A DNA stretch of 64,000 bases from contig NIVC01000762.1 of NCBI GenBank assembly GCA_002269645.1, positions 186,001 to 250,000 of the forward strand, given 5' to 3'. The DNA is from Macrostomum lignano (taxonomy: Eukaryota). Numbering within the stretch: the first letter of the stretch is position 1; the number at the start of each line of letters is the position of its first letter. This document shows, piece after piece, positions 241 to 36,298 of this stretch. The notes beneath the pieces are model-generated. The model made no database searches and was not told where the DNA came from. It saw nothing but the letters and a program-made list of their open reading frames with translations. The position numbers were made by a program, and so were the translations under genes.

Positions 241-733
241 TTACTTCTCTGCCTGGTCCGGTTCGATCTTGATCACCAGCACCAGATAGTAGAGCCAGTA
301 GAAGCAGTTGTAGAGCAGGAAACAAGCTGGGAACAAAAATCGACTGTAGGCGTCAATGTCGGAGTCGGGTGCGGGCACCGGCGATGAGGCTGGTACGCCT
401 TTGGCCATGCCTCCTCCGTCCTCGATGCTGACCGCCAGAAGGTCTTCAAGCTCCTCTGGGAAGCCGGGATATCCGCCGCCTCCCATCATCTGGTGGTGAT
501 GCGCGTTGACTCCGCCAGTTGTTCCCGTTGTCTGCGGCAACTGCAGCGGCGGGCCGCGGATGACAGCCAGCCGTTGCAGTTCGGAGCGAACCACGCAGCG
601 AATCTCCTGCTGCCAGTTCTCGATTTTTGTGCGACGAGCTCGAAAGGAAGCGACAGCGAATTCGATTAGAGCTCCGATGACGAACATGATGCTTGCGATG
701 ATCCAGATGTCTATGGCTTTGATGTAGGCCACT
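241..733 (-). CDS. Terminal exon of a Cys-loop ligand-gated chloride channel subunit (TM3, intracellular loop, TM4)
   Basis: Encodes VAYIKAIDIW...LIEFAVA (TM3) and DIDAYSRFLFPACFLLYNCFYWLYY (TM4). Acceptor cacgcag|A at 735-734; phase 2 restores LPR-VAYIK. Confidence 0.92.
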
Positions 734-859
734 CTGCGTGTGGGTGGGTGGGAGACCATGTCAAGGATGCTAAATACTTCATGTAGATACATATTTCCTT
801 AAAAAACCTAATTAAGCACTAATTCCTTTCCTCTGCTAGTTGAAGCTTGAAGGGTTTTT

Positions 860-1121
860 GTAGCCTGTAGTTTTTTGAAAGTCGGGGGTTCGATTCCGGG
901 TCGCACTGGAACAATTTTGTTCTCCAGCAAGACATCTAACTCTGCATTGCTTCAGTTCACCCAGCTGTAAAATGGGTGCCAGCATTAGCTGGGATGATTG
1001 AGGGTGTGTGACGACGGCCCCCAGTCCTTGGACTGAACAGCCGTACGCAGCCTTCAGATGCGCCGCGCAATAGCTGCGGCTGAGCTGTCGGTTGCACATC
1101 TGGCCCAATTGAGGGCAGGTG
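860..1121 (+). mobile_element. tRNA-derived SINE, family 1 (intronic)
   Basis: B-box GGTTCGATTCC at about 888-898, then a CORE-like segment (caagacatctaactctgcattgcttcagttcacccagctgtaaaatggg). Homologous copies at 30.6, 32.0 and 35.6-36.3 kb. Confidence 0.8.
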
Positions 1122-2494
1122 CTATCAGTTACTATTAATATCTGCAAGTCAGTTAGGAACTAATTGCTACGAGCATCTTGATTTGTCAGAACATCAACTG
1201 ACATCCAGCATTGTAAAAGAGGGCGTGGTCTGTATTTGTGTTGTATTCTCAGAAACCCAGTGTCATTCTAACGCTTAGTTTCGCAAGCATAAGATGAAGA
1301 GGTTTGAGACGTTTGCCCAAGATGATGACTTACTTTATTTACTTGAACAAATGTACTTCTTTCCCGTTGTCCGGAATTCCTTCAGCTTGCCTCTCACTTG
1401 GCACTTCAAAGACGCCAGGGCTGACACTCAACAGAAGAAGCTCTGGCCCGGGGATTGCGGATATGGAAACTCCTTGGGCAGGGTGCAGACTTCCGGGCAA
1501 AAGATAGGGATAGACTAACGGACTAGTGCAAGGTGTCCCTGCTTCTCCTCTCCATCATAGCTAGCCCATCCCCCTGAGATTCAGATGTATACCTAAGAGA
1601 TGTCAAATAATGACTAAATTATTCATTAGCAATGTTTTATTGGAAGATTGTTAACATTTTTTTATTCAATCAAGTCTACAATCCCAGATGAATTTCGATT
1701 CCCACAGAAGCTAACGAGAGCTGTGCTGCAGTAGATGTAGATAAGAACCCTGTCTGGGGTCTGAATCTGCATAAATTTATAAATATATTTGCATCCTTGA
1801 GTCTCTACAGCCTCTCTGTCCCCGCCAGTCTCTCTTATCTCCTACAAAGCACTTTCCGTCTGAGCAGTACAGAGTCTAAAAACCTGTTTGCCGAGCACAA
1901 GCTCTTTGCATCAGCCAGACAGTCCGCATATAAACTTTACTGTCCCCAAAGCCCCTAAGCGTAAGTCCCTCATATTTGAGCGAGTTGGCAAGTAAAACAT
2001 GTTCGAAATCTCATTTAGATTTTCCCAGCTGTAAAATACAGGCTGCACCCTCCTCTAACGAATTCCTTTAATCTATGAAGACCCGCAGAATCTCCAGGAA
2101 GCCAGGCTTCTACTCGGGTTGAAAACCTGTTTGAGCTGAGCAAGGCTAGATTTTAAGACCGAGATGAGAAGTCTGCAAATTAGAGTCTTGCAAAGCTACT
2201 TTGATCAGTGAGAGGCACGTCTGAGTCTTACTTTTTTGGGGATCTTTTTCAGCTCGGGAAATTTGCTGTCTCGTCTGCTTTTTTGCCTCTCAGTCCTCCA
2301 CTGAACTGATAAGAGCTGCTTAGCGGTAAATCGTCTTTCAAACTGCACCATTCTCCATCTCTCCCCTCCTCGTCCGCTGTCTCCGCGCTCTCTTTTCTTA
2401 TTAATCCGCCTTTCTCTTATCCTGTGAAATTATTTTTCCCCAATTCTCCTCGAGTCCCAGAGTTCCCGCAGAATCCCCAAGACCAGCGGCTGAC

Positions 2495-3458
2495 CTTGGC
2501 AGACTGGCCATTACGGTGGACGCCTGAGTCAGGATGCCCAGCAGAGTGAGCAGCCCCAGGGTCACCCTGGCTGGCACTGCCTCAATGCTGACCCAGAAGT
2601 TCAACCAGCTGACTGTGACGATGAGTATAGCGGGAATGTACGTGCCCGCCAGGTAGCTACTCAGCTGTCGCTCCAGTCTGAAGATGGCCATCAGGCAGGC
2701 GTAATTGCCAGTGCTGGTGGCGCTGCCTTCCGTGCAGTCCTTCACTTCAACGTATTTCGGCGTGTTGAACTCCGAGATCTGCATTTGGTCCATTTCTACG
2801 GCGCTTTTCAACTTGTCCCGTTTCCACTTGAACAGCAGATTGCGAGTTGTGTACCCGTAGCTGCCGATGTTCATGAAGCAAGTCTGCGTGTCCATTGGAA
2901 CGTCTGCAGTTGCATCTGGCAGGAGAACTTCATGGTGATTTTCTGCGAGTACAAAATGCTTCCGTCCGGGTCCACCCTGATCAGGTAGTTGGGCTGGGTC
3001 ATCTTGTGCAGGTAGCCCTCCTTGCCGTTGCGGAAAAACAGATCGGGTAACCAAAGGTGCTCCTTCTTAGCCGGGATTGCGATGGAGTCATTGTAGAAGC
3101 TGAACTCCCTCCTGGTGTCCCACTCCAGTCGGTGGTCCCGCCAGAATTGCCGCAGGTACATGTCGACGCTGAACTCCATATTGATGACGTCAACTTTGGT
3201 AATGCTGAGGATTTTCATGTTCACTTTGACTTCGGTTGGCGGCTCCACAGGTCGCTTAGAGCTGTCATACTCTGTCAGCGGCAGGTGGTGGGCCACGGGC
3301 CTCTGGTGCTTGTTGTAGTTCTCGAATATCGTGTCCACGATGCGATCGACAATGTTCGTGTAGTTGTCAGGCCTTCTTATGGCGCTCGCTGGCTGAAGCA
3401 GTTGGACGCTGAGTGAAACGAGTTGAAAGACCACAAGGCAGAGACTGCGGACTCGCAT
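2495..3458 (-). CDS. Cys-loop chloride channel large exon, copy 1 (signal peptide, ligand-binding domain, TM1-TM2), with a 1-bp frameshift at about 2897
   Basis: Motifs WLPDLFF, Cys-loop CQMQLQTF/PMDTQTC, loop-C DC..C pair, anion-type PAR motif. Donor AG|GTCAGC at 2494. TTCCAATG occurs where the paralog has TTCCCGATG. Restoring one base gives a 965-nt exon and a 485-aa protein with exon 241-733. Confidence 0.88.
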
Positions 3459-3885
3459 GGCTGATGGAGAGGCGATAAGAGAGGCGCACCGCGTGCTCCC
3501 TTCCAGTCTCCTTAGTCCTGCTTTTATACAAGCTTCTCCCGATCTGAGCTGCTCCTCGGGAATAATAGGAAAATCGGTGAGACAGGAGCCGAAAGCTGCC
3601 CCGTTACACGATCTTTCTTTTGCTTGTCTCGAAGTTGTGTTTCGCGGAGACAAGGTTGTTTGAGATCCTCACCTGAGGAGGAATAAAGCAGCCCCCTGCC
3701 CAGCGGTAAGGGTTGGCAGCAGCGGATTAGCTAATCCTGCAGTTCTTTGTACGCCGCTCGCTCGCCAGCGAAACTCGTGTGCAGTCGAATTCCAGCTCGA
3801 AGCATCAGCCGAGAGCCGTGTCGCTAATCTTTACCTCTGGCTACTCGACCTAGAGGCAGCCACGGAGAGTCCATCAGCCCGAGCA

Positions 3886-3901
3886 GCCAATCACGGCCAA
3901 T
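3886..3901. promoter_or_regulatory. Tandem CCAAT boxes, candidate promoter of Cys-loop copy 1
   Basis: ccaatcacggccaatc lies in a GC-rich region upstream of a plausible 5' UTR intron (donor CAG|GTGAG at 3672, acceptor tctccatcag at 3461, just before the ATG). Confidence 0.3.
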
Positions 3902-5243
3902 CGTGCAATGCGAGACGGGTGGGCTGTCGGGGACTGATTTGGCAAAGTCAGTTTTTCATCAAGCCGAGTAGCGGCAGCAGCAGGGGCGGGGCATGGCGGA
4001 CTCGGAAAGAAAGGCCGAGGAAAGAGAGAAACCTAATCCAGGGGGGGGGGGAGGGGATTTCAGAGGCCCCGCCACCCGAGGCCACACCCAATGGATGGAG
4101 TCCCATTCGGCCCGCAGTCCTAGATATAGATAGAAAATAAAAAGGCCAAAAACAACTCTGGCCAGCTAATTGCATCAGCAGAAAGGCTCTTTCAGAATCG
4201 CTTTACCGCGAAGCGTATCACACTAATGCTCAATAGTATTGTTGTACGGCAACTTACTAACATATATAAATGCTATGATGTGTGCAGTTAGATGCTAATA
4301 GATTGCAAATTCCAGTTAATTTGTCACAGATTTGTCTGATTAGTCATGCGAAGAAGCTAATTTCGATACAGTTTTTGATGCTGCCATCCTGTATCAATGC
4401 ACTGATACCAGAGCAATCTGGGTGATCTTCTATTGAACGCTTTCTAGCTTTCAAATCACAAGGCGTATGTCATTATAAATAGCAATTTTTAGATCCTCTT
4501 CAATAAAACTTTAGCCAGACTTAAACAAAAGCGAATTAACTGCTAACTGGGATTCAAGCAACAATGGCTATAATTAGACCTGCTGCACGGATCAGGTGAG
4601 TGCCCCCCCCCATAAAAAAATGCGATTAGTACGAGTTTCTAAATTTAGACCGTATGGGATTAAAGACTTTAGGGATGTATCGGAAAATCTGAAATCCCGA
4701 TCCTATCGTCTTAGTTATAATGCGATTTTTTTAGCGAGCAAGCAAAAATTAACTAAAAATGCTAAATAGTCTACTGACTAAGTAGACGCTACGGCATTTT
4801 AATCTTTATTTCCTTGCAAATCAATTACAACCGCAGTCTCAGTTTTAATTCAATTAGAAATATGATATTCCCTAAAAAGATTAATAATGAGCTTTCTTAA
4901 GCAGAAATTTTGAAATACTACTCATGAAATCTAATTGACTATAAGTGCTACTATTAGGCTGAAGTCGAAATTCGACCAAGTCCAGAATGGAGAAACTGGA
5001 TCTCAGAACAGTAGAGATGGGATTAGGCAAAATTTATGGATGAAATAAAGGCTGAAGGGTGAGGCTATGTAGGTACAATGTACTCAAGTTAGTAATGATG
5101 TAGAAGGATTCTCACTTTTTATGGTCTTACGGGCGTAATCAGCTTTGAGAAGTTGCATTGGAAATCCACGATGAGCTCAGATGCCTTAACCTCAGCAATA
5201 CTTTCTTTTTGAATGCCAATAGTTCTAGAAAACTCGCTAAATG

Positions 5244-5381
<138 letters not shown>

Positions 5382-5779
5382 AAGGACATCCCAATTTGAT
5401 TTAAGCGATAGAAAACCAGTTTCCAACTCCGCCTCATCACTCTGCTTAACTGTTGAAGATTTTAAGTCGCTTGAGAAAAGGCCTCCTCATGGGGGAATTA
5501 GTTGACTATTAACAGCCAGCACAGCCGATGCCCGAGCAGCAAGCCCGAATCCCTGCTGTTTCGACGGGAGCCTCCCAGGCTTCTGGGCAGGGACATTTCC
5601 AAGGGGATTTTGCTATCGCGTAAGGGCGCGGCTATAAAATTCTAAGTGGAAGCGGCTGCATCCGGCATATTTTTGATTCGAGGGCGGCCGCGGCTTGTCA
5701 GCCTCAAGCTACCCGCGGGAAGGATTTGCCTGGGCGGCCCAGTTTTTCTGGGATAGAAATATGTAAGCCTAAAATACAT

Positions 5780-6190
<411 letters not shown>

Positions 6191-7440
6191 TATTTCCATA
6201 GACATGCGAGACAGTCAGAGAGGCTCTGCTATTTAATAACTACCCAACTAGCACACAGCACAATCACAAGTAGCTAAAGACACATTCTTCATGCCCCGTA
6301 GACTCAAGAGATTACAGCTGTTCATTTTCCCCACCCCCATCCCACTGTAGCAGCGGCCTGAGCCCGCGAGCGACTGCTGGGGAGGGCGGGGGGCGGCCAG
6401 GTGAGCCACGCGGGATCAAGGAGAAAAAATTACCGACTTCCGGGGAATGGGGAGAATTTTTTCACCGTATTAACACCTGCTGTCGCTGTGCTGATCATCT
6501 TCCTCACCTTGCTAATCAGGGTCATTGCTGCCTCACTGTAGCTGCTGACTGCTCTGCTATCCGTTGCCGTCAGTCTTCCTCTCATCATTTGCACATCCAC
6601 GAAAAAATAATTTACTCCCCAGATGCTGTCCGTCATCAGCTTAGCGTGAGCTGACGAGCTGCGGGGGAAACTCTACCCGAGATTCTACCCGTCGAAATTC
6701 GAGCAAATTCATCTTTTTTGTTTATCTGCCTGGCATAACAGCGTTGTTAACAAGAGACTATTTGAAAACCCACCTACTCAGCTACTATCTACCTACTGGT
6801 AGTTGGCTATCTACCGATATGTTAACAACCCCATTCAATTCCTACAAAGAGCAGAAGCTACGGCACTGCAGCACTGCGCAACACGAGTTCCCCCCCGATC
6901 TCCGTTATGCCAGAAGCCCGACGAAGGCCTTCCAATGGCAAAGGAAAAAGTGCCTAAAAAACTGACCAACCCCATCGGCTCGGCTGGCTGAACCTCGAGG
7001 CCGAAAACTTTTTTAGCAAACAGAGAGAGGGGGGCTCTGCCAGTCTGCCCGCACTCTCTCACTCAATTGGTTTATTTGCTGCTCAGCAGAGCTGCGGCTG
7101 AGCTGTTCTCACACCTCCCGAGATCGGGACTCACTCTTCTTAACGGGCTCCACTTCAGCGGTCAGAAGCACCTTCAGCAGTCAGAGGGTGGGGTGGGGGG
7201 CTGTGTGCAGAGGTGAACGGAAACTCAACAGCTGCGGCGAATGCCATGATCCTCCCGGAATGAGCCGCTTCCCAAAATGATTTCCGAATCCTCAAAATGG
7301 CCAAGCAGCAGGGCATGTTTTGCTTCGACTATAATTTTTTTCCCGATTTTCACCCCAGCAGCCAGGCAGACGGGAAGTCGACTGGCTTGACGATAAAGTT
7401 GGAAGTTTAGAGTTGAAGAATATAGTTTAGGAGAGTTTCA

Positions 7441-7805
7441 GATGACAGATGGTGAGAGTGACAGATAATAACAGATGGTGAGAGTGACAGATATTAAGAT
7501 GGTGAGAGTGACAGATAATAACAGATGGTGAGAGTGACAGATATTAAGATGGTGAGAGTGACAGATAATAACAGATGGTGAGAGTGACAGATAATAACAG
7601 ATGGTGAGAGTGACAGATATTAACAGATGGTGAGAGTGACAGATAATAACAGATGGTGAGAGTGACAGATATTAAGATGGTGAGAGTGACAGATAATAAC
7701 AGATGGTGAGAGTGACAGATATTAACAGATGGTGAGAGTGACAGATATTAACAGATGGTGAGAGTGACAGATATTAACAGATGGTGAGAGTGACAGATAA
7801 AAGAT
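7441..7805. repeat. Minisatellite, 24-26 bp unit (acagatggtgagagtgacagataata)
   Basis: About 14 tandem units. Confidence 0.95.
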
Positions 7806-8344
7806 TATGAGAGTCACCGATAAGAGATGATTAGAGAGACAGATTGCAGCCGTCAGAAATTCATTACCACTTAAAGCTAAAAAATCAATGTATTTACAAA
7901 TACATTGGGAAAATTTGTGGACAAAGTGTCAAACTAGAAAACAGCATCTCGTGATGAGAGCAGCACGGGAATAGATAAGAGTGTTGAGCACGACATGAAT
8001 CAATATATTTTTAGACTTTTGACTAGAGCGTCGCTTGGTTAATACAAAAGGATGAAATCCCCGTTGAAGATGTAAACGCACATCTAGCGATAACAGAGCA
8101 TGGATGATAATTAAAGCAAGTCAGAATTATATGTTTTTTGTCTTTCTAGATGTTAAAGATGTTCCTTAAAGAGATCTTAGTAAACCTTGGCGCTATGTCA
8201 TCACAATCAAGAGCTTTTGCATCTGCTTTTTCAGCACCAAGGAAATTGAATGCCTTTCAAACTCATATCTTTAACTCACTCCCTGTCCGAATACGTCCTC
8301 GCCTAACACTGCCAACCAACCCTTTCCAAGCTGCGAGCTTAACG

Positions 8345-8700
8345 CCTCACTCCCTGCCATAAAACACCCCGAACAGACAACCCCCTCACTCCCTGCCATA
8401 AACAGCCCGAACAGCGACAACCCCCTCACTCCCTGCCATAAAACACCCCGAACAGCGACAACCCCCTCACTCCCTGCCATAAAACACCCCGAACAGCAAC
8501 AACCCCCTCACTCCCTGCCATAAAACACCCCGAACAGCGACAAACCCCTCACTCCCTGCCATAAAACACCCCGAACAGCAACAACCCCCTCACTCCCTGC
8601 CATAAAACACCCCAAAAGCAACAACCACCTCAATCCCTGTCCAGAAACACACCCCAACAGCAGAAGCCACCCCACTCCTTGCCATAAAACACCCCACCTT
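8345..8700. repeat. Minisatellite, about 41 bp unit (aaaacaccccgaacagcgacaaccccctcactccctgccat)
   Basis: About 8 units, degenerating toward the adjacent splice donor. Confidence 0.92.
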
Positions 8701-8744
8701 CCGAGACTGCCCACCCTAACTCCTGAAAAGATTGACAGACTCAC

Positions 8745-9709
8745 CTGGGCAGATTGTTAATAACCGACATGCCCTGGGTGAGTATGCCCAGCAAGGTGAG
8801 CACGCCCAGAGACACCCTGGCCGGTACAGCTTCCACGCTAATCCAGAAATTGAGCCAGCTAACTGTGACGATCAGAATGGCAGGTATGTAGGTACTGGAC
8901 AGGTAACTACCCAGCTGTCGTTCCAGCTTGAAGATCACTTTCAAGCAGGCGTAACTTCCGGTACTGGTTGCGCTACCTTTGGTGCAATCCAGCGCTTGAA
9001 TCTCCTTTTCGCGTGGCGTATTAAACTCTGAGATCTGCATTTCGCCCAGCTCAACGGGCACTTTGTTGCCATCCTTCTTCCACCGGAATAGCAGCTTGGA
9101 TGTGGTGTAACCGTAGCTGCCGATGTTCATATCGCAAATTTGCGTGTCCATCGGGAACGTCTGCAACTGCATCTGGCAGGCGAATTTGACTGTGACCTTC
9201 TGCGAATAGAGAATGTTCCCGCTGGGATCCACTCTGATCAGGTAGTTCGGCTGCGTCATCTCGTGCAGATAGCCCTGCTTGCCGTTCCGGAAGAACAGAT
9301 CCGGCAACCAGAGGTTGTCCTTCTTAGCTGGAATCGCGATGGAGTCATTGTAGAAGCTGTACTCCTTGTCGTCCCATCGAAGCCGGTCGTCCTGCCAGAA
9401 CTGTCGCAGGTACATGTCCAGCGTGAACTCCATGTTGATGACGTCAACTTTGTTGATGCTGAGGATCTTCATATTGACGTCAACGGCTGTTGGATCCTCT
9501 TCGATTTTGCCGTCCTTCGACTGTCGACTCATCGGCACTGGACGATGGTGCTTATTGTAGTTGCGGAAGATCGAGTCCACTATTCTGTCCACAATGTTTG
9601 TGTAGTTGTTCAACGACGGCTGGCGTGCGGAGGCCTGCAGCGGCAGCAGCAGCAGCAGCTGGTGCAGCACCAGGAGAAGCGACAGCACCTGCAGCTGCAG
9701 CACCTCCAT
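8745..9709 (-). CDS. Cys-loop chloride channel large exon, copy 2 (signal peptide, ligand-binding domain, TM1-TM2)
   Basis: Intact frame from ATG 9709 with a Leu-rich signal peptide, WLPDLFF, CQMQLQTFPMDTQIC and the PAR motif. Ends at consensus donor AG|GTGAGT (8744), the same position and phase as copy 1; 965 nt. Confidence 0.93.
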
Positions 9710-12294: not shown

Positions 12295-13265
12295 TAACCA
12301 TAGACACAATCCGCCATTGTCTGACTCCAGAACCATAGACACAATCTGCCATTGTCTGACTCCAGAACCATAGACACAATCTGCCATTGTCTGACTCCAC
12401 AACCTTAGACACAATCTGCCATTGTCTGACTCCAGAACCATAGACACAATCTGCCATTGTCTGACTCCACAACCTTAGACACAATCTGCCATTTTCTGAC
12501 TCCAGAACCATAGACACAGTCTGCCGTTGTCTGATTCTAAAGCCATAGAGACAATCGGCTGTTGTCTGACTCTAGAACCATAGACACAATCTGCCATTGT
12601 CTGACTCCACAACCATAGACACAATCTGCCATTGTCTGACTCCACAACCATAGACACAATCTGCCATTGTCTGACTCCACAACCATAGACACAATCTGCC
12701 ATTGTCTGACTCCACAACCATAGACACAATCTGCCATTGTCTGACTCCACAACCATAGACACAATCTGCCATTGTCTGACTCCACAACCATAGACACAAT
12801 CTGCCATTGTCTGACTCCACAACCATAGACACAATCTGCCATTGTCTGACTCCACAACCATAGACACAATCTGCCATTGTCTGACTCCACAACCATAGAC
12901 ACAATCTGCCATTGTCTGACTCCACAACCATAGACACAATCTGCCATTGTCTGACTCCACAACCATAGACACAATCTGCCATTGTCTGACTCCACAACCA
13001 TAGACACAATCTGCCATTGTCTGACCCCACAACCATAGACACAATCTGCCATTGTTTAACTCCACAACCATAGACACAATCTGCCATTGTCTGACTCCAC
13101 AACCATAGACACAATCTGCCATTGTCTGACTCCACAACCAATACAGACACAATCTTCCATGTCTGACTCCAGAAACAGACACAATCTGCCGTTGTCTGAC
13201 TCCAGAACCATAGACACAATCTGCCATTGTCTGACTCCAAAACCATAGACAAAATCTGCCATTGT
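12295..13265. repeat. Minisatellite, 35 bp unit (aaccatagacacaatctgccattgtctgactccac)
   Basis: About 27 head-to-tail units, homogeneous in the centre and diverged at the edges. Confidence 0.97.
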
Positions 13266-13877
13266 GGAAGTCTATGACCATGCAATTTCATAGAATTCAT
13301 GGAGATATTGTGAAATATCGTCAGTTTGATGCTGCGAGCGTAAAAACGAAAAATGACTTTCTATATTTTGGTGATTAATTTTTCAATTGAGAATGGGTCT
13401 CTAGTGAAATTCACACAATTCAGAAATTTAGGATTCAGCTATTTCGCTGTCAACCGCTTCTTTCACTTTCGTTAGTCAGGCAACCGATGAAGAAAAACCG
13501 CTACAGAGAGCCCCCTCTGTTCGTGACAGACTGCAGAACCGGGCCAATTACTATTTTGTCGAGTTTTATATTTCAAACACAACATGCAGCCAGAATCCAG
13601 TTCGGCATGTCGAATATTCATTACTACAGTTGCTATATACCAAATGATGAGTTGCTTAAATTCTGTCTACACGTGACTTCAAGGCGAAATTATATTCAGA
13701 ATGAAACATATAGGCCTACTATTGGGAAATATTTACGCTTTGAATAATAAAGACAGTTGTAAGGTTTTATAAGGGGCACATGGACAGTGAGAAAGGAATT
13801 CTGTAGAGCACATATATAGACACTAAAATCTCGTTTGCAATGCCATCGTGGGAAGCCAACTTTTAATAATTGAAAGT

Positions 13878-30629: not shown

Positions 30630-30932
30630 ACCTGCCCCAATTGGGCCAGATGTGCAACAGACAGCTCAGCCGCAGCTATTGCGCGGCGCATCTGAAGGCT
30701 GCGTACGGCTGTACAGTACAATGACCTGGGGGGTTACTCCACACACCCTCAATTACCCCCTAAATTACCCCAGCTAATGCTGGCACCCATTTTACAGCTG
30801 GGTGGACTGAAGCAATGCAGAGTTAAGTTTCTTGCTCAAGGACACAAATTCCCGCCCCCCCCCCGAGTAGGTCGAGAATCGAACCCCCGACCTTTATCTC
30901 GTGCGTCCGACGCTCTATAACCACTAGGCTAC
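30630..30932 (-). mobile_element. tRNA-derived SINE, family 1
   Basis: Reverse complement begins gtagcctagtgg (A box) ... ggttcgattc (B box); colinear with 860-1121. Confidence 0.85.
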
Positions 30933-31935: not shown

Positions 31936-32034
31936 GGAGAGCAAGTGGAACTGGGCGGCGAGAGTGGTCAGCATGAGAAAATATAAAATACTTTCTTCAA
32001 TAATAATAGCTCGTAATAAAAAAATGATAACACA

Positions 32035-32326
32035 TGCCTCAATTGGGCCAGATGTGCAACCGACAGGCGACAGCTCAGCCGCAGCTATTGCACCGCGCAT
32101 CTGAAGACTGCGTACGGCTGTTCAGTCTAAGGACTGGGGGGGGGGGTCGCCACACCCAACCCTCAATAACCCGAGCTAATGCTGGCACCCATTTTACACC
32201 TAGGTGAACTGAAGCAATGCAGAGTTAAGTGTCTTGCTCAATCAAGGACACAAATTGTTCCGAGTGGGTCGAGAATCGAATCCCCGACCTTCAAGTCATG
32301 AGCCCGACGCTTCAACCACTAGGCTG
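32035..32326 (-). mobile_element. tRNA-derived SINE, family 1
   Basis: Colinear with the other family-1 copies. Confidence 0.85.
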
Positions 32327-35562: not shown

Positions 35563-36298
35563 CACCTGCCCCAATTGGGCCAGATGTGCAACCGGGTCTA
35601 TGAAATTTGCTTGCGAGAAGTTTGCTTGCAGAAATTATGCTTGCCGAGGTTTGTCAGCCAGTTTTCTTGTGGAAATCAGAACTACAAAGATTTATACTGT
35701 TACAGATCCCTATCTACCTATTCTAAATCTCTAATCATTCGATATACTAAATTCTTAGAATGAAACTCTATAAGCCTAGTTTGAAAAAGCTCAGTGTCAA
35801 GTCAGTTTACGTCGACGCTGATAAGAATCCACTTTCAAAGCATCTGTAGTAAGTAATAATTGACTGACCGACTTCAAAAGCAATCAAACAAGCAAGCAAA
35901 CAAGATGATTCGGCAAGTTAAAACCTTGCAATTGTGATTGCGAATTTCTAGGAAGCATACATCGAAATTCCACAAGCAAAGTTCGGCAAGCAAAGTTCGG
36001 CAAGCAAAATTCGGCAAGCAAAATTCCGCAAGCAAAGCTCGGCAAGCAAAATTCCTGCAAGCAAATGTCGTACTCCCGTGCAACCGACAGCTCAGCCGCA
36101 GCTATTGCGCGGCGTATCTGAAGGCTGCGTACGGCTGTTCAGTCCAAGGACTGGGGAGTCGCCACACACACCCTCAATTACCCCAGCTAATGCTGGCACC
36201 CATTTTACAGCTGGGTGAACAGGAACAGGTTCCAGTGGGATCGGGAATCGAGCCCCTGACCTTCAAGTCGTGAGTCCGACGCTCCAACCACTAGGCTA
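35563..36298 (-). mobile_element. tRNA-derived SINE, family 1, split by a MITE
   Basis: 35563-35593 and 36078-36298 join into one family-1 copy when the insert is removed. Confidence 0.85.
35594..36077. mobile_element. Non-autonomous DNA transposon (MITE) with an 8-bp target-site duplication
   Basis: GTGCAACC at 35586-35593 and 36078-36085. Termini GGG...CCC with imperfect inverted repeats and subterminal tttgcttgc arrays. Confidence 0.85.

Follow-up and report, generated by a model that had tools for sequence, protein, structure and literature searches.

The window analysed here, a stretch of 64,000 nt on contig NIVC01000762.1 of the flatworm Macrostomum lignano, carries near one end a locus for a predicted Cys-loop receptor subunit, a pentameric ligand-gated ion channel (pLGIC) protein that resembles the glutamate-gated chloride channels (GluCls). 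All features of the locus are on the minus strand (Table 1). Two large paralogous exons, the distal exon U and the proximal exon D, are followed by one exon that codes for the helices M3 and M4 and the loop between them. Both large exons open with a start codon and a signal peptide of their own, and both end in the linker between M2 and M3, at the same phase, with a splice donor that can be joined in frame to the single M3-M4 exon downstream.

Exon U opens with ATG followed by the hydrophobic signal peptide MEVLQLQVLSLLLVLHQLLLLLPLQASA, and codes for the signal peptide, the entire extracellular domain, M1, M2 and the M2-M3 linker as far as the residues LP, after which an AG is left over in phase 2. 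Its end is ...GMSVINNLP + AG, then GTGAGT, and the U type is marked by a serine at the pore position 2' and by the linker GMSVINNLPR. Exon D likewise has a signal peptide of its own, behind an ATG at 3458-3456; it ends in ...ASTVMASLP + AG, then GTCAGC, and the marks of the D type are a threonine at 2' and the linker ASTVMASLPR. A pyrimidine-rich tract and CAG lead up to the shared exon (acceptor ...cacgcag/ at 735-734), which begins with (A)GTGGCCTAC, read as (R)VAY, and codes for an intracellular loop rich in glycine and proline. The translation of U joined to the shared exon is an open protein of 485 residues. With exon D taken from an intact copy of the locus, on the contig here called C110, the product is 485 residues as well. 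The U and D proteins are about 70% identical (tblastn E 1e-119; 71% in a second comparison). The alternative unit is 321 codons long, which is about two-thirds of the protein, the pore helix included.

An earlier note on this DNA had described two exons of 965 nt, each with an ATG, a signal peptide and a phase-2 donor at the residues LPR, one of them in need of a one-base correction, and a product of 485 residues from either donor. The starts, signal peptides and donors were all confirmed from the sequence, and the correction proved to be a base missing from exon D. The length is right for U; exon D of the window is one base shorter, and its start is one base off the implied one. Likewise, the 485 residues hold for U, and for D with the intact exon of C110, the D exon of the window being frameshifted. 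At the deletion site the window has TT-CCA, as compared to TTTCCA on C110 and TTCCCA on a third contig, C691. The site is thus a T/C difference between the other two copies, inside a short T/C run, and the frameshift is an error of the consensus or else a null allele of this one copy.

Table 1. Features of the channel locus, as positions in the 64,000-nt window.
Feature	Positions	Strand	Remarks
Exon U, distal variable first exon	9709..8745	minus	965 nt, open reading frame; starts ATGGAGGTG
5' splice donor of exon U	8743..8744	minus	GT of AG/GTGAGT
U-D interval	3459..8744	minus	intronic for U transcripts; microsatellite and minisatellite arrays; tail exons of older gene models
TATAAAA box, candidate core promoter of D	3522..3528	minus	about 70 nt upstream of the D ATG
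Exon D, proximal variable first exon	3458..2495	minus	964 nt; content as in exon U
1-bp deletion in exon D	2898..2899	minus	splits the window copy of D into two frames
5' splice donor of exon D	2493..2494	minus	GT of AG/GTCAGC
Shared (constant) exon: M3, intracellular loop, M4 and stop	733..241	minus	TAA at 243-241

Only one M3-M4 exon had been seen by the earlier note, which proposed a tblastn search of 3.7-8.7 kb for another. A tblastn search of the complete 64 kb (word size 2, E<=10) found no second M3-M4 exon in the window; 3.7-8.7 kb was empty, and the best off-target match had an E of 0.18. A profile hidden Markov model (HMM) of M3-M4, searched with the filters off (--max) and E<=50 against six-frame translations of the copies of the window locus and of its paralogues, agreed with this: in all of them, the stretch from U to D gave only noise of 3-6 bits. 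There are no Ns in the window. The U-D interval was seen to contain tandem repeats at 5244-5381, 5780-6190, 7445-7823 and 8345-8695, made up of (CTTA)34, (GATA)105, a 26-nt unit repeated about 14 times and a 41-nt unit repeated about 9 times. The array nearest to exon U begins approximately 50 nt past the U donor.

The assignment of the protein rests on several lines of comparison. U joined to the shared exon matched the Pfam families for the ligand-binding extracellular domain, PF02931 (E 1.4e-49), and behind it the transmembrane domain, PF02932 (E 1.3e-28), of neurotransmitter-gated channels, and among PDB sequences it matched GlyR, GABA-A and GluCl, at E values as low as 1.8e-74. The AlphaFold2 model, with a mean predicted local distance difference test score (pLDDT) of 78.6, has a beta-sandwich and four transmembrane helices, at residues 266-289, 295-319, 331-380 and 447-478, and its top Foldseek matches are GABA-A (beta3) and GlyR chains, at target-normalised TM-scores of 0.72-0.86. 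The Cys-loop is C178-x13-C192 (CQMQLQTFPMDTQIC), with 13 residues between the cysteines, both of which are invariant in an alignment of 28 sequences; a second pair, C242/C255, flanks loop C and is invariant too. At the cytoplasmic end of M2 there is a PAR motif, PARVSLG in U and PARVTLG in D. By these motifs, the protein is predicted to belong to the anion-selective branch with two Cys-loops (GlyR/GluCl/GABA-A-like). The closest proteins are other M. lignano entries, and after them come GluCl-like proteins of parasitic flatworms, with SmGluCl-2 at 48-50% identity. The lophotrochozoan 'S-like' GluCl clade is marked by an arginine in loop A together with an amino-acid-agonist motif, which consists of aromatic residues in loops A, B and C, a threonine in loop C, an arginine in loop D and a serine in loop E (Lynagh et al., PMC4338433). 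The agonist motifs DLFFRNGK, GSYGYT, TSTGxYAC, YLRQ and LYSQK are found in U and D at the window locus and at the three paralogous loci described below, and they align with SmGluCl-2. Homology would therefore make the protein a subunit of a glutamate-gated chloride channel of the flatworm 'S-like' GluCl clade.

The whole genome (764,410,778 bases in 5,269 contigs) was searched with the translations of both exons. The window locus, called locus A, was also found on contigs C110 and C691, with the order and spacing alike and 96-99% nucleotide identity over the interval, and on both contigs exon D is intact and 965 nt long. There are three older paralogous loci, each in about three copies: B (C647/C724/C975), C (C1142/C1215) and D (C1037/C4852/C1484). 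The order U, D, single M3-M4 exon recurs in all copies of the window locus and at loci B, C and D. A copy number of about three is consistent with the known neopolyploidy of M. lignano. Genome-wide, the close family has about 28 large exons to 14 M3-M4 exons, a ratio of 2:1, which leaves no reserve of orphan M3-M4 exons in the rest of the genome. M3 and M4 have the same amino acid sequence at all four paralogous loci, where they would serve eight different front halves. More distant pLGIC paralogues of M. lignano have the intron position after LPR in common with this family and have one large exon for each M3 exon. No intronless retrocopies that would record the junctions were found, the close M3-M4 matches all being in open frames of 141-192 aa.

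Some of the copies have peculiarities of their own. At locus B there is a third and far more diverged large exon between U and D, with about 51% identity, which ends LPR/GTAAGA (L035:6955-7700 on C647, about 85.0-85.6 kb on C724 and about 40.7-41.5 kb on C975). On C647 it has no signal peptide and has lost M2, and on C975, where M1-M2 seems to have been kept, the match continues to LPR; it may be decaying or be a third usable variable exon. On C1142 (10294-13321 and 16251-19299; L037/L038) exon D and the M3-M4 exon are present twice in tandem with identical scores, giving the order U, D, M3-M4, D, M3-M4, which points either to a local duplication of very recent date or to one made in the assembly. 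Contig C889 has a pseudogene-like relative (C889: 413982-418694; L048), in which four stop codons interrupt the divergent large exon and a frameshift breaks up the M3-M4 exon; its M3 nevertheless shares 98% identity with M3 of the window locus.

We consider it probable that this GluCl gene of M. lignano has two alternative first exons on one shared M3-M4 exon. Each 5' exon would be a self-contained front two-thirds of the subunit, with start, signal peptide, glutamate-binding domain, M1 and M2, and the 3' exon would supply M3, the cytoplasmic loop and M4 to either front. Exon D has no acceptor upstream, and therefore it can only be intronic in transcripts that start at U. In such a pre-mRNA it would leave within the 8-kb intron, and the cap-proximal U donor would join the sole conserved acceptor, at 734. 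When transcription starts just upstream of D, the D donor would be used and the D isoform made, so that one locus would give two subunits of 485 aa with identical M3-loop-M4. From the own ATG and signal peptide of each exon, and from a TATA box (TGTATAAAA) upstream of D at two of the four loci, we infer that U and D have separate promoters. The box is at -70 at locus A and at -51 at locus D and is not found at B and C; as a motif it is a candidate for the D promoter, which presumably lies in the U-D interval.

Sequence comparisons between the loci show that both types of exon have been kept by selection. All eight exons, U and D at four loci, begin with an ATG and a hydrophobic signal peptide. 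The U exons of all loci end GMSVINNLP/AG gt and have Ser at 2', and the D exons end ASTVM..LP/AG gt and have Thr at 2'. These type-specific residues of M2 and the linker are invariant over the four loci at the amino acid level, despite synonymous codon changes. The between-locus ratio of nonsynonymous to synonymous divergence (dN/dS, by Nei-Gojobori) is 0.07-0.25 for U-U and 0.13-0.35 for D-D, at dS of 0.6-2.4 (about 0.7-1.5 for D-D), and as dS is near saturation the values are approximate. The donor consensus is at the identical phase in 8/8 exons, with flanking introns that are unalignable; in the U donors the GT, a purine at +3 and a G at +5 are kept in 4/4, and the intron downstream cannot be aligned. 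U and D exons are both under purifying selection, the type-specific residues included.

The two exons of a locus do not have the same history along their whole length. In the middle of the exon, the part that codes for the core of the binding site, U and D have 95-100% nucleotide identity over about 120 codons at loci C and D, and up to 99% over 30 codons at locus B, but in the N-terminal loop next to the homogenised core the U/D identity is only 41-48%. Trees were made of two partitions, which were picked after inspection of the alignment. The exon ends place all U exons in one clade, with support of 93/96 and presence in 99% of bootstrap trees, and by the approximately unbiased test they reject a tree in which exons are paired by locus (p-AU 0.0005). 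The core gives the opposite result: exons of the same locus group together, and the test rejects a clade of U exons (p-AU 6.5e-6). The tree of the whole exon does not resolve loci C and D, because of intralocus gene conversion. The simplest reading of the sequences is that the U/D duplication is older than the amplification to four loci and that both types have been functional since. In the same way, the simplest reading of the core is that intralocus gene conversion homogenises it, and that selection shields the isoform-specific ends.

For a paralogous locus, the junction of the distal to the constant exon is found among deposited proteins. In the 90%-identity cluster of one match we found PAA70662.1/PAA71747.1 (P0128, BOX15_Mlig000841g2/g5, 474 aa), which is exon U of locus C joined to the M3-M4 exon of locus C, residue for residue, in all three copies. 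Exon D is skipped, and the introns are 6.9-13.9 kb long with GT...AG ends. The BOX15 annotation was based on RNA-seq alignments and a de novo transcriptome and was not ab initio, and the annotation pipeline dropped minor isoforms (isoform-frac 0.75). The distal-to-constant junction is thus on record for the paralogous locus C, by a deposited RNA-guided model. A junction-spanning query of 211 aa found no M. lignano protein that contains the shared exon of the window, and neither Mlig000841 nor Mlig026840 is listed in the supplement of PMC5816591. Presumably the window locus is expressed as well.

Several points weigh against two alternative first exons. As exon D is frameshifted in the window, the copy as assembled can encode the U isoform only. 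A search with D joined to the shared exon found the D-type exon in no deposited protein, and the exact 485-aa product had no record in a look-up with limited coverage of this genome. The other deposited U models (P0001, P0126, P0127, P0002) have U joined to short intronic exons and not to M3-M4. The near-saturated dS and the choice of the tree partitions after inspection should be counted on the same side. Taken at face value, some of these points could mean that only U is used, and that the D exons are unexpressed leftovers of an old duplication, intact-looking through conversion from U. No deposited model has D, whereas U with M3-M4 is annotated, and the core at loci C and D has been extensively converted between U and D. 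We find this explanation unlikely. The 2'-Thr, the ASTVM linker and the longer N-terminal loop of D cannot come from U by conversion, and the D-specific residues have been kept at four loci that differ synonymously, with the D-D values of dN/dS and dS given above. The intact D exons all retain the ATG, the signal peptide, the open frame and the in-phase GT donor, and the other two copies of the window locus are among those with D intact. Furthermore, the pipeline dropped minor isoforms, and therefore the absence of D models is weak evidence. Selection and exon anatomy suggest that the D exons are used.

The reverse explanation, that D with the shared exon is the real gene and that U is an orphan partial duplicate which gives truncated products with cryptic intronic exons, seems to us very improbable. 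It draws on the UniProt and NCBI models of U that stop in short intronic tails, but these tails are unreliable. The three models of the window locus derived from WormBase ParaSite (A0A1I8J7E9, A0A1I8G849, A0A1I8HTN2) start at Met59, without a signal peptide, and have three different short tails, all of which map to the U-D interval. The tail of P0001, the one of the three that was compared with the other loci, has no counterpart at loci B-D. PAA70668.1 joins exon U of locus C to an out-of-frame piece of an open reading frame (ORF) in an inserted element, present in one of the three copies, and the tail of P0002 is such an out-of-frame read, found in 1/3 of the locus C copies. Moreover, the locus C model PAA70662.1/PAA71747.1 has U joined to M3-M4, M2 and the linker of U are under strict selection, and the U donor is conserved at four loci. 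The older models were rejected as proof of truncated products, on account of their discordant tails, the Met59 starts and the out-of-frame tail from a single-copy insertion. The insertion itself, of about 6-7 kb, lies in the U-D interval of locus C in the C1215 copy (L041:7800-9000, plus orientation). It has a long ORF that starts MADRDKLMHLSKVALQALCAHANISSRGNKADLV, with a CCCH-like motif, and is probably a mobile element.

That a second M3-M4 exon was lost or collapsed in the assembly, or that a duplicate exon was mis-joined, is barely credible even for an early PacBio assembly of a repeat-rich neopolyploid genome, with broken exons at the ends of the related contigs C3883 and C1141, since the same order and spacing recur on three independent contigs and the layout also on contigs of three diverged paralogous loci, with neither a second M3-M4 exon in the N-free window nor orphan M3-M4 exons elsewhere.

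The motifs that contact glutamate are the same in U and D. The two differ in the N-terminal alpha1-beta1 loop, in the loop F region, at the pore position 2' (Ser vs Thr) and in the M2-M3 linker, where there are differences at six positions, 15', 16', 17', 19', 20' and 21' (numbering by alignment to GlyR alpha1). In pLGICs, the positions that differ between U and D set conductance, sensitivity to channel blockers and the coupling of binding to gating. As the contact residues are shared, and 2' and the linker differ, the U and D subunits would be expected to differ in gating, conductance, pharmacology or assembly, and not in their ligand. The earlier note had proposed that the ligand-binding and pore half is swapped; as regards ligand binding this is an overstatement, as the fixed differences are in the N-terminal loop, at 2' and in the M2-M3 linker. 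As a whole its reading is partly supported, and the architectural part of it strongly. With somewhat less confidence than in the exon design itself, we favour a model where the choice of promoter picks the front module, and where the products share their trafficking and anchoring, differ in gating and pore, and may form heteromers. The core would be converted and the ends selected, and the arrangement would have been kept through at least three locus duplications.

The rest of the window holds other features. Between 18146 and 62223, on the minus strand, there is a run of at least eight ORFs in tandem, long and poor in introns, for paralogous proteins similar to E3 ubiquitin ligases of the RBR type. 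One of them has IBR domains and the RBR C-terminal domain PF18091, a domain of HOIP/RNF31. By eye, the proteins have RanBP2-like CxxC zinc-finger motifs, and several have long (QQRE)n or (RDSGQPMRE)n repeats; some of the ORFs appear truncated or fused. A repeat of about 250 bp at 875-1130, in the intron between exon D and the constant exon, has copies at 30630-30850, 32022-32294 and 36078-36220. It contains a perfect box like that of a tRNA T-arm (GGTTCGATTCC...) and is probably a tRNA-derived short interspersed element (SINE); ARAGORN and Rfam scans of the window found no tRNA or Rfam match, this repeat included. At 12475-13360 there is a minisatellite-like tandem repeat with long open frames in several phases and a unit of approximately ...WSQTMADCVYGCGVRQWQIVSMVVESDNGRLCL..., which is probably non-coding.

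The diversity of pLGICs is usually ascribed to gene duplication or to small alternative internal exons, and the one classic locus of modular build, nematode unc-49, keeps the N-terminus constant and varies the channel part. If it is true that whole front halves alternate in M. lignano, the boundary between M2 and M3 is a workable module junction in vivo, and the loci would put to the test in nature which parts of a subunit have to evolve together. There is also a practical side to this. M. lignano serves as a free-living model of the parasitic flatworms, in which GluCls are candidate targets for drugs. Its present annotations mis-model the genes, in that tails are truncated and D isoforms absent, and any pharmacology or knock-down has to wait for correct gene models. 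A full-text search, with incomplete coverage and hence no proof of novelty, found no report of an equivalent design in Cys-loop receptors or of the structure of M. lignano pLGIC genes.

Among characterised proteins the closest relative is SmGluCl-2, with the above identity over about 90% of the length. The likeness to its clade extends to the PAR motif, the cysteine pair at loop C, the loop A arginine in FFRNGK and the aromatic/Thr/Arg/Ser motif. The SmGluCl subunits form glutamate-gated Cl- channels that are insensitive to 1 uM ivermectin. The M. lignano genes differ from SmGluCl-2 in that an intron interrupts the M2-M3 linker and the first exon is duplicated.

As for the way in which one gene gives several subunits, insects have mutually exclusive internal exons in RDL (exons 3 and 6), GluCl (exon 3) and the alpha6 subunit of the nicotinic acetylcholine receptor (nAChR), and GABRB3 has the alternative first exons 1 and 1a, which change the signal peptide only. 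Here too subunit diversity comes from one gene, but what is exchanged is short, or only a signal peptide, as compared to 321 codons in M. lignano. Nematodes have pLGIC loci in which shared and alternative blocks are combined; avr-14 is one of them and unc-49 another. The likeness of unc-49 is that a single pLGIC locus makes several subunits by joining shared to alternative exon blocks. All unc-49 subunits share the 5' exons, which code for loops D, A and E and a part of loop B, and the remainder of the binding site and M1-M4 come from alternative 3' blocks; the choice is made by splicing and selection of the 3' end from one promoter. The polarity is reversed in M. lignano, where it is the 5' blocks that alternate in front of a common M3-M4, and where the start of transcription would decide between them. 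The window locus thus lacks the unc-49 layout of a common 5' part with alternative 3' blocks.

The design comes closest to that of UGT1A and the clustered protocadherins, where 9-60 large 5' exons in tandem, with their own starts, use a single constant set. Tandem paralogous 5' exons with their own starts and a single constant exon were found at all four loci in M. lignano. In both cases the variable exons are complete N-terminal modules, their donors would have to reach past the variable exons downstream, and conversion spares the isoform-specific segments. The variable/constant design that the earlier note had compared to protocadherins and UGT1A is strongly supported by the layout at four loci and by the 2:1 ratio of exons, but not the scale, as M. 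lignano has two variable exons, or three at locus B, where the third is degenerate in the examined copy. The analogy should therefore be taken as one of design. The constant part differs too, since in M. lignano it is a single exon for two helices that would pack against the variable M1 and M2, and not an autonomous cytoplasmic or cofactor domain.

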